A stretch of DNA of 64,000 bases, taken from NCBI RefSeq assembly GCF_964204645.1, contig NC_134032.1, positions 2,290,416 through 2,354,415 on the forward strand, read 5' to 3'. Source of the DNA: Tubulanus polymorphus. Lineage: Eukaryota > Animalia > Nemertea. Position 1 is the stretch's first letter. Each line of letters opens with the position of its first letter. The translations under genes were made by a program, and so were the position numbers. Shown one piece after another: positions 34,307 to 45,270 of the stretch. The notes under the pieces were generated by a model. It ran no database searches. It was not told the DNA's origin and saw nothing but the letters and a program-made list of their open reading frames with translations.

Positions 34307-37300
34307 ATGGCGTCGATGAAGAGTTTGTTTGTAGTCGCTGTATTTTTATACGTCGGGAATTCTCTAGGTAAGCGCATATTTATATCAATATCTCTGGGCG
34401 ATCAATGTCAATGGATTCATTCTCACGCGTGAAACCGTTGTATTCAATGTTCTGACGACCTGAAAATTTTGAAAATATGGTACCATTTAAAGGCTTTTAG
34501 AGGGCTTCTAGAGGCTAGCAGAGCAATCCAGAATAAACGAATTCGAGACAAGATTTCAACAGATGCGGATAAAAAATGAAGCTGGCGAACCCATGAAAGA
34601 ATGGTTGTCGCCAACTTCGCCTAGTGCCCCTATAATCTTTAAAAGTGCCCCTTAACAATTATACAGAATACGGCTAAGTGCCCCTTCATTGTTAACAATC
34701 GGCAAAAATTGCCTCGTCTTCACATTTATCCTTATGTCGTGTGCCATCTTCCAAACCAAAAGTTCCCCTAAAATTTTAAAAATTAGGCAAAAAAGTGCCC
34801 ATTTATTCAACATTTTCCGCGTATAGTGCCCTCTTCTAAAGTACGAGTGCCCCTTTAGCCTTCTCTGAAGAGGCAAGGACAAGGTGCCCTCATCTAAAGC
34901 ATGAGTGCCCCCTTTTTAATTTATCATGATTGAAGGCTTTGCAAATATGATTATCTCTCCTCACTTTCTTGGCAGCAGTATATACCGATTAATTTTATAA
35001 TTATGCTCGGATTCCGGACACGGAATTAGCGGTTGCTGAAATAATGCCGTCAAAAATATTGCCGGTTAAATTTCGAAGGGCACTTAAAAATTCTAGACCG
35101 TATTGGGCAATACGGCTGATACGGTCTGGATCCGCCCCTGGACCAGGAGGCCCTATCCTTATTATCTCTATCATTTTTCTCAGAGAGAAATTAATGTATT
35201 AAAATGCAAGTCACATGTACTCTAGAACAATAAGAACAGATTCATGATTTTTGAACCATATTTTAAAAATGCACTATCAACTGTCCAATCTGATGTCTAA
35301 TGGTCTAATGTTCTAATAATCTGTTGTCTGTTGTTTCATGTTCCAGTTATTTAAATGTGTAATGATCTTATGATAGTAACAGTACTGTTTTTCAAACCCG
35401 AAGTAAAGTTCTAGCTTCCAACTACTGTCCAAGATCTCATGATCTACTGTCTAATAATCTAATTATGAACTGTTCAATGTTCCAATGATCTACTGTCTAA
35501 TGATTTAATGACGAACTGTCTAATGGTCTCTAATGATCTACTGTCTAATGACCTAATGATTAACTGCCCAATGATCTAATGATCTTAGGGACTAATGTTC
35601 TATTGTCCAATGACCTAATTATCAATAGTCTAATGATCTAATCTGCAGATCATATTTTCATGCTCTATTACTGATTAATTTGAACAGAAATATGAACCAT
35701 GTTACTGAGGGTCTTACTGTTGATTACTGATTAATTTGAACAGAAATATGAAAGATGTTACTGAGGGTCTTACTGTTAATTACTGATTAATTTGAACAGA
35801 AATATGAAAGATGTTACTGAGGGTTTACTGTTAATTACTGATTAATTTGAACAGAAATATGAAAGATGTTACTGAGGGTCTTACTGTTGATTACTGATTA
35901 ATTTGAACAGAAATATGAAAGATGTTACTGAGGGTCTTACTGTTGATTACTGATTAATTTGAACAGAAATATGAAAGATGTTACTGAGGGTCTTACTGTT
36001 AATTACTGATTAATTTGAACAGAAATATGAAAGATGTTACTGAGGGTTTACTGTTAATTACTGATTAATTTGAACAGAAATATGAAAGATGTTACTGAGG
36101 GTCTTACTGTTGATAACTGATTAATTTGAACAAAAATATGAAAGATGTTACTGAGGGGTTTACTGTTGATTACTGATTAATTTGAACAGAAATATGAAAG
36201 ATGTTACTGAGGGTCTTACTGTTAATTACTGATTAATTTGAACAGAAATATGAAAGATGTTACTGAGGGGTTTACTGTTGATTACTGATTAATTTGAACA
36301 GAAATATGAACGATGTTGAACAGTCAGGTGTGTTGACTGGTGATCACTGATTAAGGTGCTGTGACTGGTGATCAGTCAGGTGCTGTGACTGGTGATCAGT
36401 CAGGTGTGATGACTAGTGATCAGTCAGGTGGGGTGACTGGTGATCAGTCAGGTGTGGTGACTGTTGATCACTCTGGTGGGGTGACTGGTGATCAGTCAGG
36501 TGCGGTGACTGGTGATCAGTCAGGTGTGGTATCTGGTTATCAGTCAGGTGTGGTGACTGGTGATCAGTGAGGTGCGGTGACTGTTGATCACTCGGGTGTG
36601 GTGACTGGTGATCAGTCTGGTGCGATTACCGGTGATCAGTCAGGTGTGGTGACTGGTGATCAGTCAGGTGTGGTATCTGGTTATCAGTCAGGTGTGGTGA
36701 CTGGTGATCAGTGAGGTGACTGTTGATCACTCGGGTGTGGTGACTGGTGATCAGTCTGGTGCGATTACCGGTGATCAGTCAGGTGTGGTGACTGGTGATC
36801 AGTCAGGTGTGGTATCTGGTTATCAGTCAGGTGTGGTGACTGGTGATCAGTGAGGTGACTGTTGATCACTCGGGTGTGGTGACTGGTGATCAGTCAGGTG
36901 TGGTGACTGGTGATCAGTCAGGTGTGGTGACTGGTGATCAGTCAGGTGTGGTGACTGGTGATCACTCGGGTGTGGTGACTGGTGATCAGTGAGGTGCGGT
37001 GACTGGTGATCAGTCAGGTGTGGTGACTGGTGATCAGTCAGGTGTGGTATCTGGTTATCAGTCAGGTGTGGTGACTGGTGATCAGTGAGGTGACTGTTGA
37101 TCACTCGGGTGTGGTGACTGGTGATCAGTCTGGTGCGATTACCTGTGATCAGTCAGGTGTGGTGACTGGTGATCAGTCAGGTGATGTGACTGGTGATCAG
37201 TCAGGTGCGGTGACTGGTGATCACTCGGGTGTGGTGTGGTGATCAGCAGCGGCGGCGGCAGCAGCAGCAGCAGCAGCAGCAGCAGCAGCAGCAGCAGCAG

Positions 37301-45270: not shown

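Follow-up and report, generated by a model that had tools for sequence, protein, structure and literature searches.

The 64,000-nucleotide window of Tubulanus polymorphus contig NC_134032.1 analysed here contains LOC141909485, a gene of about 17 exons on the + strand, in compatible phases, which RefSeq labels as "uncharacterized" or, for one isoform, as "cubilin-like." It is a real, transcribed ribbon-worm gene, and its architecture match lies far above chance expectation. A reading from the letters alone (hereafter the sequence-only reading) had assembled by hand a signal peptide, two CUB domains, a PLAT-like domain, a Thr/Ser stalk, a transmembrane (TM) segment, and tail exons; all of these are present, and their order is correct. 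The RefSeq proteins P0018, P0001, and P0017 agree with our exon map, the first two with identical exons and frames except that the TM exon is omitted, and GT..AG joints in RNA run X1 agree with the exon borders. Exon 1 (34307–34367) carries the start codon and signal peptide (MASMKSLFVVAVFLYVGNSL) and ends in phase 1 at the donor G|GTAAGC; its start is the same in P0018, and it is 95–100% identical in paralogs pA–pD. CUB1 is encoded by exon 2 (37513–37664, first third, Pfam CUB on the exon piece), exon 3 (37915–37996, middle, as in P0018), and exon 4 (39738–39869, last third, Pfam CUB), which an RNA joint (39869|39946) connects to the first third of CUB2 in exon 5 (39946–40079, Pfam CUB). The middle and last third of CUB2 follow in exon 6 (40340–40430) and exon 7 (40510–40644), placed by RNA joints 40430|40510 and 40644|40764. 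Exon 8 (40764–40993) encodes the first part of the PLAT-fold domain, and exon 9 (41080–41197, as in P0018) encodes its end together with a Cys-containing linker, the two being linked by RNA joint 40993|41080. Exon 9 closes in phase 1 at the donor CAG|GTTCGT, exactly where conservation stops in paralog pF.

Downstream on the + strand, there is a 162-bp tandem repeat of 4.4 copies (42215–42931), in every unit of which lies a 45-bp mini-exon of phase 1 that encodes (R/G)PSTVTQVTETTSTS. Mini-exon copies at 42389–42433, 42714–42758, and 42876–42920 have GT donors; those at 42226–42270 and 42551–42595 read AT at this position, so their donors are dead. RefSeq isoform X1 uses the copies at 42389 and 42876, and in the RNA a loose end runs from a mini-exon into 43089. 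Usable T/S-rich repeats of 15 residues number two or three, which makes the stalk short for a mucin. The TM exon (43089–43241; …AGFWATVGSAIGFSIVIAIVIVVTVVLYIHRRNMYNRNTT) is open and 96–98% identical to that of pA–pC. The sequence-only reading had suspected an unresolved exon between 43221 and 44229, but none is present: the TM exon of the family ends at 43241 in phase 1 and joins 44229 directly. Tail exon 1 (44229–44279; (G)VVSEPDVDYECSVGAS) contains the third tyrosine (44255–44257) in the motif VDYECS, now placed at 44249–44266; this residue is kept in the CUB-family paralogs, but P0002, an Ig-type relative, has Lys in its place. Tail exon 2 (44368–44463) is the Pro/Ala-rich linker (ARIGRRTVAPPAPSTPAAPAVPPAAGVGFIEE), with an internal 9-bp repeat whose copy number varies among paralogs. 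It is followed by the acidic tail exon 3 (44552–44601; VENVEDDDFTAGSVNIE), a 50-bp exon that had been missed and that is placed by RNA joints 44463|44552 and 44601|45073 and by P0018. The last exon (45073–45270; DIGEDGTIYARL to EEDVGLYGELDFSRPAIPLTELNNH*, stop at 45268–45270) is a portable two-tyrosine module containing motif 1, TIYARL (45091–45108; family consensus (T/A)(I/V)YA(R/D)(L/I/F)), and motif 2, GLYGELDF (45205–45228; family consensus xxY(G/A)(E/I)(L/I/V)DFx-R). Both motifs lie where they had been reported, with a spacing between the tyrosines of 38 codons instead of the 40 first counted.

The two CUB domains are recognized by Pfam (PF00431) as two stretches of P0001 (E 2.3e-25, 89.5 bits). 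On single exon pieces the CUB signal is weak (21–26 bits), Pfam searches of single exons gave no match for the PLAT or tail exons, and CDCP1_CUB_6 gave only a faint Pfam hit (E 0.032). The PLAT-like domain is upheld at the level of fold but not as one read-through open reading frame, being divided between two exons at 40993|41080. Its AF2 model, of moderate confidence (pLDDT 66), has eight strands, and the 19 best Foldseek matches are all lipoxygenase or lipase chains (TMq 0.56–0.65, probability 1.0), enzymes that carry a PLAT domain. The model therefore points to a PLAT/LH2 fold, a predicted eight-stranded beta-sandwich superposable on known PLAT domains and apparently shared with those of lipoxygenases, pancreatic and lipoprotein lipases, and polycystin-1; the closest matches are coral 8R- and 11R-lipoxygenases, LPL, and PLRP2. 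At the sequence level, the PLAT profile PF01477 did not match the domain of LOC141909485, also when E values as high as 10 were allowed, a significant match between this domain and known PLAT/LH2 sequences was not found, and a profile of the PLAT-like domains retrieved nothing from PDB sequences. In paralog P0009, the second PLAT-like domain gave a sub-threshold Pfam PLAT match (E 0.0019, 19.4 bits versus a cut-off of 23), and the ESM Atlas offered a weak lead to PLAT and ATS3. LOC141909485 has one such domain and members of the family have one to three, in tandem outside the cell, where they form a stalk that sets the CUB head off from the membrane. We know of no described receptor that uses PLAT repeats in this way, and an outer build in which a pair of CUB domains sits atop a PLAT fold is undescribed.

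Copies of the last exon lie at 17 genomic places and begin in phase 0 without exception; in the copies read, both tyrosines are kept. RefSeq proteins of the family were reached by a search with a profile of this tail; exons of the locus were searched individually, and all full-length sequences analysed are proteins from databases. The same exon ends four Ig-superfamily genes at 34–45% identity with both tyrosines invariant, and in an alignment of nine sequences that includes these four, the invariant positions are Y9 and A10 (+1) of motif 1 and Y47, D51, F52, and R54 of motif 2. The proposed check on conservation is thereby answered, both Tyr motifs holding invariant across relatives as distant as 34% identity. 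The tail had been called ITSM/ITIM-like, but neither motif of LOC141909485 fits a canonical consensus. The ITIM form (S/I/V/L)-x-Y-x-x-(I/V/L) is broken by G at −2 in GLYGEL, as had been recognized, and by T at −2 in TIYARL, and the ITSM form T-x-Y-x-x-(V/I) is broken by L at +3 in TIYARL. Relatives do carry canonical forms: motif 1 of paralog pF (P0010) is the ITSM TIYARI, and motif 2 of the Ig-type relatives is an ITIM in P0004 (SVYGEV), P0003 (SEYAIV), and P0007 (SQYSEL), their motif 1 being AIYADF or TVYADL. Readings of the tail as an ITAM (YxxL/I-x(6-12)-YxxL/I) or a hemITAM ([DE][DE][DE]-x-YxxL), as defined in PMC12582321, were rejected, the former with 37 residues between the tyrosines and the latter with acidic triads two or three residues too distant from Tyr (EDGTIY, EEDVGLY).

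The paralog search suggested by the sequence-only reading returned about ten genes with the same build as LOC141909485, and the comparison of ectodomain and tail variability that it had proposed shows a hypervariable ectodomain and a conserved tail. Relative to pA–pD, the CUB exons are 18–19% different and their own intron flanks 7.6–8.1% (Fisher p 1e-10 to 1e-14), with dN of 0.22–0.24 and omega of 1.2–1.3. Exon 2 is the most variable, with 47–54% amino acid identity to paralogs, and the variable positions sit between conserved CUB framework residues. The tail exons are 2.4–2.7% different from those of pA and pB against 6% in the flanks (p about 0.01), a difference that is not significant in the comparison with pC and pD. 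Synonymous divergence in the CUB exons (0.18–0.20) exceeds intron divergence, and exon 5 (CUB2a), which is 55–65% identical to intron-sharing paralogs, finds its best non-self match (77%) in a type-B-tail gene at C8:3112964. Because of this synonymous excess and mosaic similarity, cassette exchange could explain part of the variability, and positive selection through point mutation alone is not established. Searches beyond T. polymorphus retrieved no relative of the tail and otherwise only CUB lectins of nematodes (E about 1e-5), so deep conservation cannot be claimed.

Sister genes couple similar heads to another tail. The ectodomains of P0011 and P0009 are 78% identical over 603 amino acids, yet the tail of P0011 differs (DVYEDIENDDDDVYDDV); P0008 and P0009, which both have tail A, are 74% identical. 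Tail B in the sister genes is of the YEDI..YDDV type (YEDI-x5-7-YD(D/N)V), and genes bearing it adjoin tail-A genes at two sites on C8, at 3.11 Mb and 4.14 Mb. Some sister genes have up to 39 tail tyrosines, mostly in PEDxY(I/V)VA-type repeats. Related ectodomains, alternative putative signalling tails, and clustered genes together match the layout of a paired-receptor family.

The explanation we favor, with roughly even confidence, is that LOC141909485 is the GC-donor copy within a lineage-specific, birth-and-death family of single-pass receptors that have a variable CUB head and a two-tyrosine, "brake"-type tail. The two CUB domains behind the signal peptide would form the variable ligand-binding part, spaced from the TM helix by PLAT-fold beta-sandwiches, one to three in number, and by a short Thr/Ser stalk of O-glycosylation type. 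The last exon would act as a portable signalling module in which each of the two invariant tyrosines has acidic surroundings and I/V/L at −1. Engagement of ligand might lead Src-type kinases to phosphorylate both tyrosines, and the phosphotyrosine pair, 38 residues apart, could then dock a tandem-SH2 protein. The genome encodes two SH2-SH2-PTP (SHP-type) loci, both on C7, at 4118074–4125084 and 19099445–19105016, and one of these phosphatases would be the most probable partner, delivering a "brake" signal. An opposing or different signal would come, by paired-receptor logic, from the sister genes whose ectodomain is nearly identical and whose tail is YEDI-x5-7-YD(D/N)V. An inhibitory function for the tail of LOC141909485 itself is something we can only infer, and a role for this gene in self-recognition is speculation.

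The splice donor of the TM exon raises the question of whether LOC141909485 still makes a full receptor. At 43242–43247 it reads GCTTGT, and four C8 paralogs, pA–pD, have GTTCGT or GTTTGT. In RefSeq the TM exon is absent from every isoform of the gene: X1 and X2, which bear the tail, leave it out, and X3 terminates in the stalk by read-through of a mini-exon. Splicing from TM exon to tail in the proposed frame is seen in the paralogs, both in the RefSeq proteins P0008 and P0009 and in RNA joints, and in these two proteins the tail tyrosines lie on the cytoplasmic side of a TM protein. Paralogs pD and pA or pB, and not LOC141909485, are the source of the RNA joints for the TM-to-tail step and for the tail chain. 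RNA run X1 was accordingly rejected as proof of the TM-to-tail joint in LOC141909485, the joint having an A unique to pD; the tail-chain contig from the same run encodes ARIDRRTV, as in the RefSeq protein of pB, where LOC141909485 codes ARIGRRTV. Bases diagnostic of LOC141909485 are A at 43205, GAT at 44252–44254, and, at 44377–44379, those that give ARIG in place of ARID. Putative RNA run X5 (2015) yielded nothing of the locus. The sequence-only designation "type I receptor" thus applies to P0008 and P0009 and is withheld for LOC141909485 on account of its GC donor, its RefSeq isoforms lacking the TM exon, and the paralog origin of the RNA joints. With GC in place of GT, LOC141909485 may yield a TM-less secreted form, as in the RefSeq models, or an intron-retaining, tail-less TM form, and its product may, judging from the damaged splice signal of an otherwise intact TM exon, sit outside the membrane.

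It is a serious possibility, which we rate somewhat below even, that the gene is a decaying or neofunctionalised paralog, in which skipping of the TM exon gives a secreted CUB-CUB-PLAT protein with a useless "tail" or retention of the intron gives a TM protein ending …NTTGLLFIFYRGV*, the product being a soluble or tail-less decoy or inert. The difference in donor from pA–pD and the RefSeq isoforms speak for it, as do zero-mismatch contigs of RNA run X1 that cover the TM-to-tail intron up to the donor of tail exon 1 at 44279, and the lack of any hit when short protein fragments across the TM exon of LOC141909485 were looked for by word search. Other members of the family are also damaged: the pC model (P0012) stops just past the TM segment and tail exon 1 aligns only in part at its locus, pE consists of tail exons only, and pG comprises two tail fragments in inverted arrangement. 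However, GC-AG introns can be spliced, the RefSeq models may merely reflect the predictor's bias against a GC donor, and paralog reads cross-map, which precludes a copy-specific read-out; moreover, the reading frame stays open throughout the TM and tail exons, and these are 96–99% identical to those of functional-looking paralogs. Decay or neofunctionalisation of this copy is compatible with the family-level explanation. The gene can be regarded as a natural experiment in which one altered donor, GC in place of GT, may make a decoy out of a receptor.

A second alternative, which we consider unlikely, retains phosphotyrosine signalling and dispenses with the brake, the tail being a non-inhibitory dock for Src, Syk, Nck, or Grb2-type adaptors in activation, adhesion, or cytoskeletal control, comparable to nephrin or CDCP1, and the family serving recognition between cells during development or in the nervous system and not in immunity. 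The same exon does end the "nephrin-like" Ig-FN3 protein P0003, which has three pYxN (Grb2-type) sites; the sequence EEDVGLYGEL resembles optimal Src substrates; and a Src-activating CUB receptor with a Tyr-phosphorylated tail exists in CDCP1. On the other hand, a YAxL/I core with a second YxxL/I/V about 30–40 residues away is the typical SHP-binding layout of SIRP-alpha, PZR, and PD-1, the sister genes have a distinct ITAM- or Nck-like tail class that suggests a division of labour, and fast head diversification with clustered birth-and-death fits immunity or allorecognition better than developmental adhesion. Finally, we think it quite improbable that the motifs are YxxPhi sorting signals of endocytic or scavenger receptors that take up CUB-bound cargo through AP-2 without phosphotyrosine signalling, since, although YARL and YGEL both fit YxxPhi, CUB receptors such as cubilin are endocytic, and "cubilin-like" is the RefSeq name of one isoform, invariance extends beyond YxxPhi (A at +1 of motif 1, D, F, and R at +4, +5, and +7 of motif 2, I/V/L at −1), both tyrosines are preceded by acidic runs of the kind typical of Src-kinase substrates, relatives have canonical ITIM or ITSM forms, up to 39 tail tyrosines would be senseless as sorting signals, and a hypervariable head is unexpected in a nutrient receptor.

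Returning to the favored reading of a birth-and-death receptor family, its most far-reaching extension, which we find possible but on balance doubtful, is that nemerteans have an independent, checkpoint-style "stop/go" system. An ITSM/ITIM-like exon would have been shuffled between Ig-superfamily and hypervariable CUB-PLAT receptors, sister tails would be ITAM- or Nck-like, LOC141909485 would provide a secreted or tail-less decoy, and the whole would be a candidate basis of nemertean non-self recognition. Classical work has described graft rejection in Nemertea, and no recognition receptor has, to our knowledge, been described for the phylum; the family, if true, would be a concrete candidate gene set for comparative immunology in this group.

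The family has the same type I layout as PD-1, SIRP-alpha, PZR/MPZL1, BTLA, and G6b-B, with two tail tyrosine motifs tens of residues apart, and the YAxL core of motif 1 resembles those of SIRP-alpha (TYADL) and PZR (VIYAQL). Alternative tails in sister genes are likewise a feature of paired receptor families. Homology to the vertebrate ITIM/ITSM receptors was not detected, the tail-profile search having given no vertebrate matches; their ectodomains are Ig or lectin where the nemertean ones are CUB and PLAT, and the motifs of LOC141909485 are non-canonical at −2 and +3. The order of motifs, ITSM-like then ITIM-like in LOC141909485, is the reverse of that in PD-1. The hexapeptide YGELDF is identical to the ITIM region of PD-1, whose motif is VDYGEL (PMC7078208). 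Homology to PD-1 was rejected, this six-residue string being the sole shared feature, and the likeness therefore looks chance or convergent.

Among invertebrates, Botryllus fester/FcoR and Hydractinia Alr are clustered, fast-diversifying type I families whose tails bear ITIM, hemITAM, and other YxxI/L/V motifs, with tail types swapped (PMC12582321). Those families are of the Ig superfamily or Ig-like, whereas the nemertean family is CUB-PLAT; their role in allorecognition has been shown genetically, and T. polymorphus is a solitary animal. CDCP1/Trask, DCBLD2/ESDN, NETO, and neuropilin are type I proteins with CUB ectodomains, as in the nemertean family, and CDCP1 and DCBLD2 signal via tail tyrosines that dock SH2 proteins. 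There is no orthology, however: these are single-copy, conserved genes without PLAT domains or ITIM/ITSM-like pairs, in contrast to the hypervariable nemertean multigene family. Coupling of a variable head to an ITIM- or ITAM-type tail lies at the heart of NK-cell and checkpoint biology in vertebrates and of the small number of understood invertebrate allorecognition systems, and the heads in these systems are all Ig-like or lectin. A CUB head on a PLAT-fold stalk would, if true, show the tail logic to be independent of the head and to spread by exon shuffling, given that the tyrosine exon is common to the CUB-PLAT family and to Ig-superfamily genes of the same genome.

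Every piece of the type I receptor that a sequence-only reading had proposed lies in stop-free + strand segments at 34.3-45.3 kb of the window, and setting the coding exons by splice sites and phases allowed each to be located. The gene comprises a signal peptide exon (34307-34367), three exons for CUB1 (37513-37664, 37915-37996, and 39738-39869), three for CUB2 (39946-40079, 40340-40430, and 40510-40644), two for a PLAT-like domain (40764-40993 and 41080-41197), a stalk of at most three usable 45-bp mini-exons (42389, 42714, and 42876) within a 162-bp tandem repeat, a TM exon (43089-43241), and a tail built from the exon VVSEPDVDYECS (44229-44279), a Pro/Ala-rich exon (44368-44463), an acidic exon that the first model lacked (44552-44601), and a last exon (45073-45270), all on the + strand. 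The last exon carries TIYARL (45091-45108) and GLYGELDF (45205-45228) where they had been placed, but their tyrosines are 38 rather than 40 codons apart. By sequence, this gene is LOC141909485, to which RefSeq assigns no function and whose RefSeq models agree with our exon map in exons and frames, the TM exon excepted. Its isoforms are X1 (P0018, 539 aa), X2 (P0001, 536 aa), and the "cubilin-like" X3 (P0017, 434 aa); the full-length sequences we analysed are RefSeq database proteins, and exons were searched singly. The segment at 26273-26374, 8 kb upstream of the signal peptide exon, matches the alternative first exon of the paralog P0009 (MIDNSFRRLICQLISPSVNSAGRKWISISS…) with 91% identity across 34 aa and may serve as an alternative 5′ exon lacking a signal peptide.

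Sequencing run X1 contains precise GT..AG joints that runs X3 and X4 lack, and it therefore behaves like RNA. Its joints connect the CUB/PLAT part (39869|39946, 40430|40510, 40644|40764, and 40993|41080) and the stalk to the tail (mini-exon to 43089, 43241 to 44229, 44463|44552, and 44601|45073). Reads were placed at 90% likeness in a family with close paralogs. In the TM-to-tail joint the tail exon begins with A, a base found among the compared copies only in the C8 paralog pD, and the tail-chain contig codes for ARIDRRTV, as in the RefSeq protein of paralog pB, where LOC141909485 reads ARIGRRTV. The joints thus show the architecture of the family and not the splicing of the LOC141909485 copy itself. 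Zero-mismatch X1 contigs extend over introns of LOC141909485 (e.g., 43762-44279), and the locus is transcribed. Intron 1 is nearly all tandem repeats at 35424-37477, with an 8- to 46-bp array (35424-35642), a 56-bp unit repeated 11.7 times (35667-36317), a 24-bp unit repeated 39 times (36317-37246), and (CAG)78 (37244-37477), which ends 35 bp before the exon 2 acceptor. The TM-to-tail intron holds a high-copy repeat (43520-43901) at which contig depth in the DNA runs X3 and X4 is 2,600-13,500 versus roughly 5-270 in adjacent bins, with many loose ends at 43632-43735. Eight copies of a 32-bp tandem repeat occupy the last intron (44627-44888), where intronic open frames are rich in "PPTPPQSIAWNHP," and a 47-bp × 11.7 array lies directly downstream of the gene (45919-46469).

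The TM exon raises the question of whether this particular copy is a membrane receptor. In the four C8 paralogs compared (pA-pD), the exon ends in …ACTACTG|GTTCGT or …ACTACTG|GTTTGT, versus …ACTACTG|GCTTGT in LOC141909485. The exon is absent from all three RefSeq isoforms of LOC141909485, being skipped in X1 and X2 (…TTSTS-S-VVSEPDV…); X3 terminates through mini-exon read-through. It is included in the RefSeq proteins of pB (P0008; …YNRNNTG-VVSEPDV…) and pD (P0009; …YNRDTTD-VVSEPDV…), and a fragment search found no short protein fragments spanning the TM exon of LOC141909485. The copy may therefore not be a membrane receptor, its product being possibly a secreted or a tail-less form, and the reading that it is a decoy or decaying, which is compatible with the other readings, is somewhat less likely than not. 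Of the five copies of the stalk mini-exon, two (42226-42270 and 42551-42595) have AT instead of GT as donor, and isoform X3 reads through one of these to a stop, giving an ectodomain-only product.

The ectodomain is variable on a conserved scaffold. Pfam CUB matches two stretches of P0001 (E 2.3e-25), and the third ectodomain has no Pfam match in the LOC141909485 copy; the second PLAT-like domain of P0009 matches Pfam PLAT at a sub-cut-off E of 0.0019. An AlphaFold2 model built on an alignment of eleven PLAT-like domains has eight strands (mean pLDDT 66), and its top 19 Foldseek matches in the PDB are all chains of lipoxygenases or lipases, which are PLAT-domain-bearing proteins (TMq 0.56-0.65, probability 1.0). 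Because a sequence profile gave no match in the PDB, the proposed PLAT-like assignment holds at the level of the modelled fold only. The number of PLAT-like domains per paralog ranges from one to three. At canonical CUB Ca2+ positions within 37515-40644, Q is found here versus E in some paralogs (FNLQP, FDIQP), and in CUB2, S versus D (TSSSY versus TSDSx). We take these residues to be Ca2+ binding from the CUB consensus, and the copies may differ in how they bind ligands with Ca2+.

The PLAT-like exon occurs at 11 genomic places, mostly on contig C8, and at least 60 CUB "a" exons of the LOC141909485 type are present in the genome, with large clusters at C8:14.8-16.3 Mb. Amino acid identity to the four C8 paralogs is 95-100% in the signal peptide, 46-58% in the first two CUB1 exons, 52-67% in the first two CUB2 exons, 67-81% in the last exon of each CUB, 75-89% in the PLAT-like domain, 84-98% in the TM exon, and 91-97% in the last exon. 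CUB exons differ by 18-19% in nucleotides versus 7.6-8.1% in intron flanks of 120 nt per side (Fisher p 1e-10 to 1e-14), with dN 0.22-0.24, dS 0.18-0.20, and omega 1.2-1.3, and the variable positions fall between conserved framework residues. Tail exons differ from pA and pB by 2.4-2.7% versus about 6% in flanks (p about 0.01), a difference that is not significant against pC and pD. Together with invariant tail tyrosines, this bears out the expected pairing of variable ectodomain with conserved tail. Exon-cassette exchange probably contributes beside selection for diversity, since synonymous divergence of the CUB exons also exceeds intron divergence and CUB2a is 77% identical to an exon of a gene with a different tail (type B, below) versus 55-65% to paralogs with common introns. 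With either cause, the heads vary and the scaffold is conserved.

The last exon occurs at 17 genomic places, begins in phase 0 in all copies read, as would be expected of a shuffled module, and retains G6, Y9, A10, R31, P34, G39, Y47, D51, F52, and R54 at 34-45% identity. A profile aligned from the genomic copies and run against 1.84 billion representative proteins matched seven at E ≤0.001; the tail is present in five of these (P0001-P0004 and P0007), five of five from RefSeq T. polymorphus. Outside the CUB family it terminates four Ig-type genes (P0003, P0004, P0002, and P0007), including the "nephrin-like" P0003 (six Ig, FN3). P0003 (C6:2.22 Mb) has three Grb2-type pYxN sites upstream of the last exon (YENQ, and YQNV twice), so the tail module is combined with further docking motifs. 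Orphan tail-exon copies at C6:19050150-19052058 (L008-L010) and C8:4473928-4474134 (L006 and L027), one with two tail fragments inverted relative to each other, of which one is frameshifted, and the other retaining only the last two tail exons, are signs of birth-and-death turnover.

By the usual definitions of ITIM, (S/I/V/L)xYxx(I/V/L), and ITSM, TxYxx(V/I), GLYGEL and TIYARL fall outside consensus. The ITSM/ITIM-like tail first proposed thus stands as paired tyrosine motifs with some canonical relatives (TIYARI in P0010; SVYGEV, SEYAIV, and SQYSEL in Ig-type genes), and not as canonical motifs here. Type A genes, with this tail, have sisters with another. The ectodomain of P0011 is 78% identical to that of P0009, and its TM segment and tail differ (…DIYLQP…PIYQTQDDVYEDIENDDDDVYDDVDI…). 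In P0013 and P0014, as many as several dozen PEDxY(I/V)VA-type repeats come after the YEDI..YD(D/N)V core that they share with P0011, and the P0013 tail has 39 tyrosines; the clusters of these genes (C8:14.8-16.3 Mb) hold CUB-CUB(-CUB)-TM genes without PLAT domains. Genes with this type B tail adjoin type A genes at C8:3.11 Mb and C8:4.14 Mb. Another family member, at C8:2267319-2270564 and about 20 kb before the window start, has CUB exons, PLAT-like exons, and a TM exon of type-B-like form; it shares its strand with LOC141909485, lies about 56 kb upstream of it, and may be its partner gene. SH2, SH2, and PTP exons occur in order at C7:4118074-4125084 (−) and C7:19099445-19105016 (+), and SHP-type readers therefore exist in this genome. 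These two separate loci give the genome two SHP-type genes, where most invertebrates have one.

We propose that both tail tyrosines would be phosphorylated, that a tandem-SH2 phosphatase would dock on the tail with inhibitory output, and that the receptors would act in immunity or recognition. Phosphotyrosine docking is slightly favored, and inhibitory SHP recruitment is tentative. That the motifs are instead YxxPhi endocytosis signals is unlikely, and ITAM and hemITAM readings, with the motifs as defined in PMC12582321, are ruled out by spacing. The PD-1 ITIM reads VDYGEL (PMC7078208); since homology to PD-1 was not detected, the exact YGELDF match most plausibly reflects chance or convergence. 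The features first noted from the sequence are confirmed, and their reading as an inhibitory or self-recognition receptor is supported in part. Our literature search found no paper on invertebrate CUB receptors with ITIM-type tails or on the LOC141909485 family, which, as read from its genes, would combine the logic of paired or ITIM-like receptors with a CUB-PLAT ectodomain that is undescribed.
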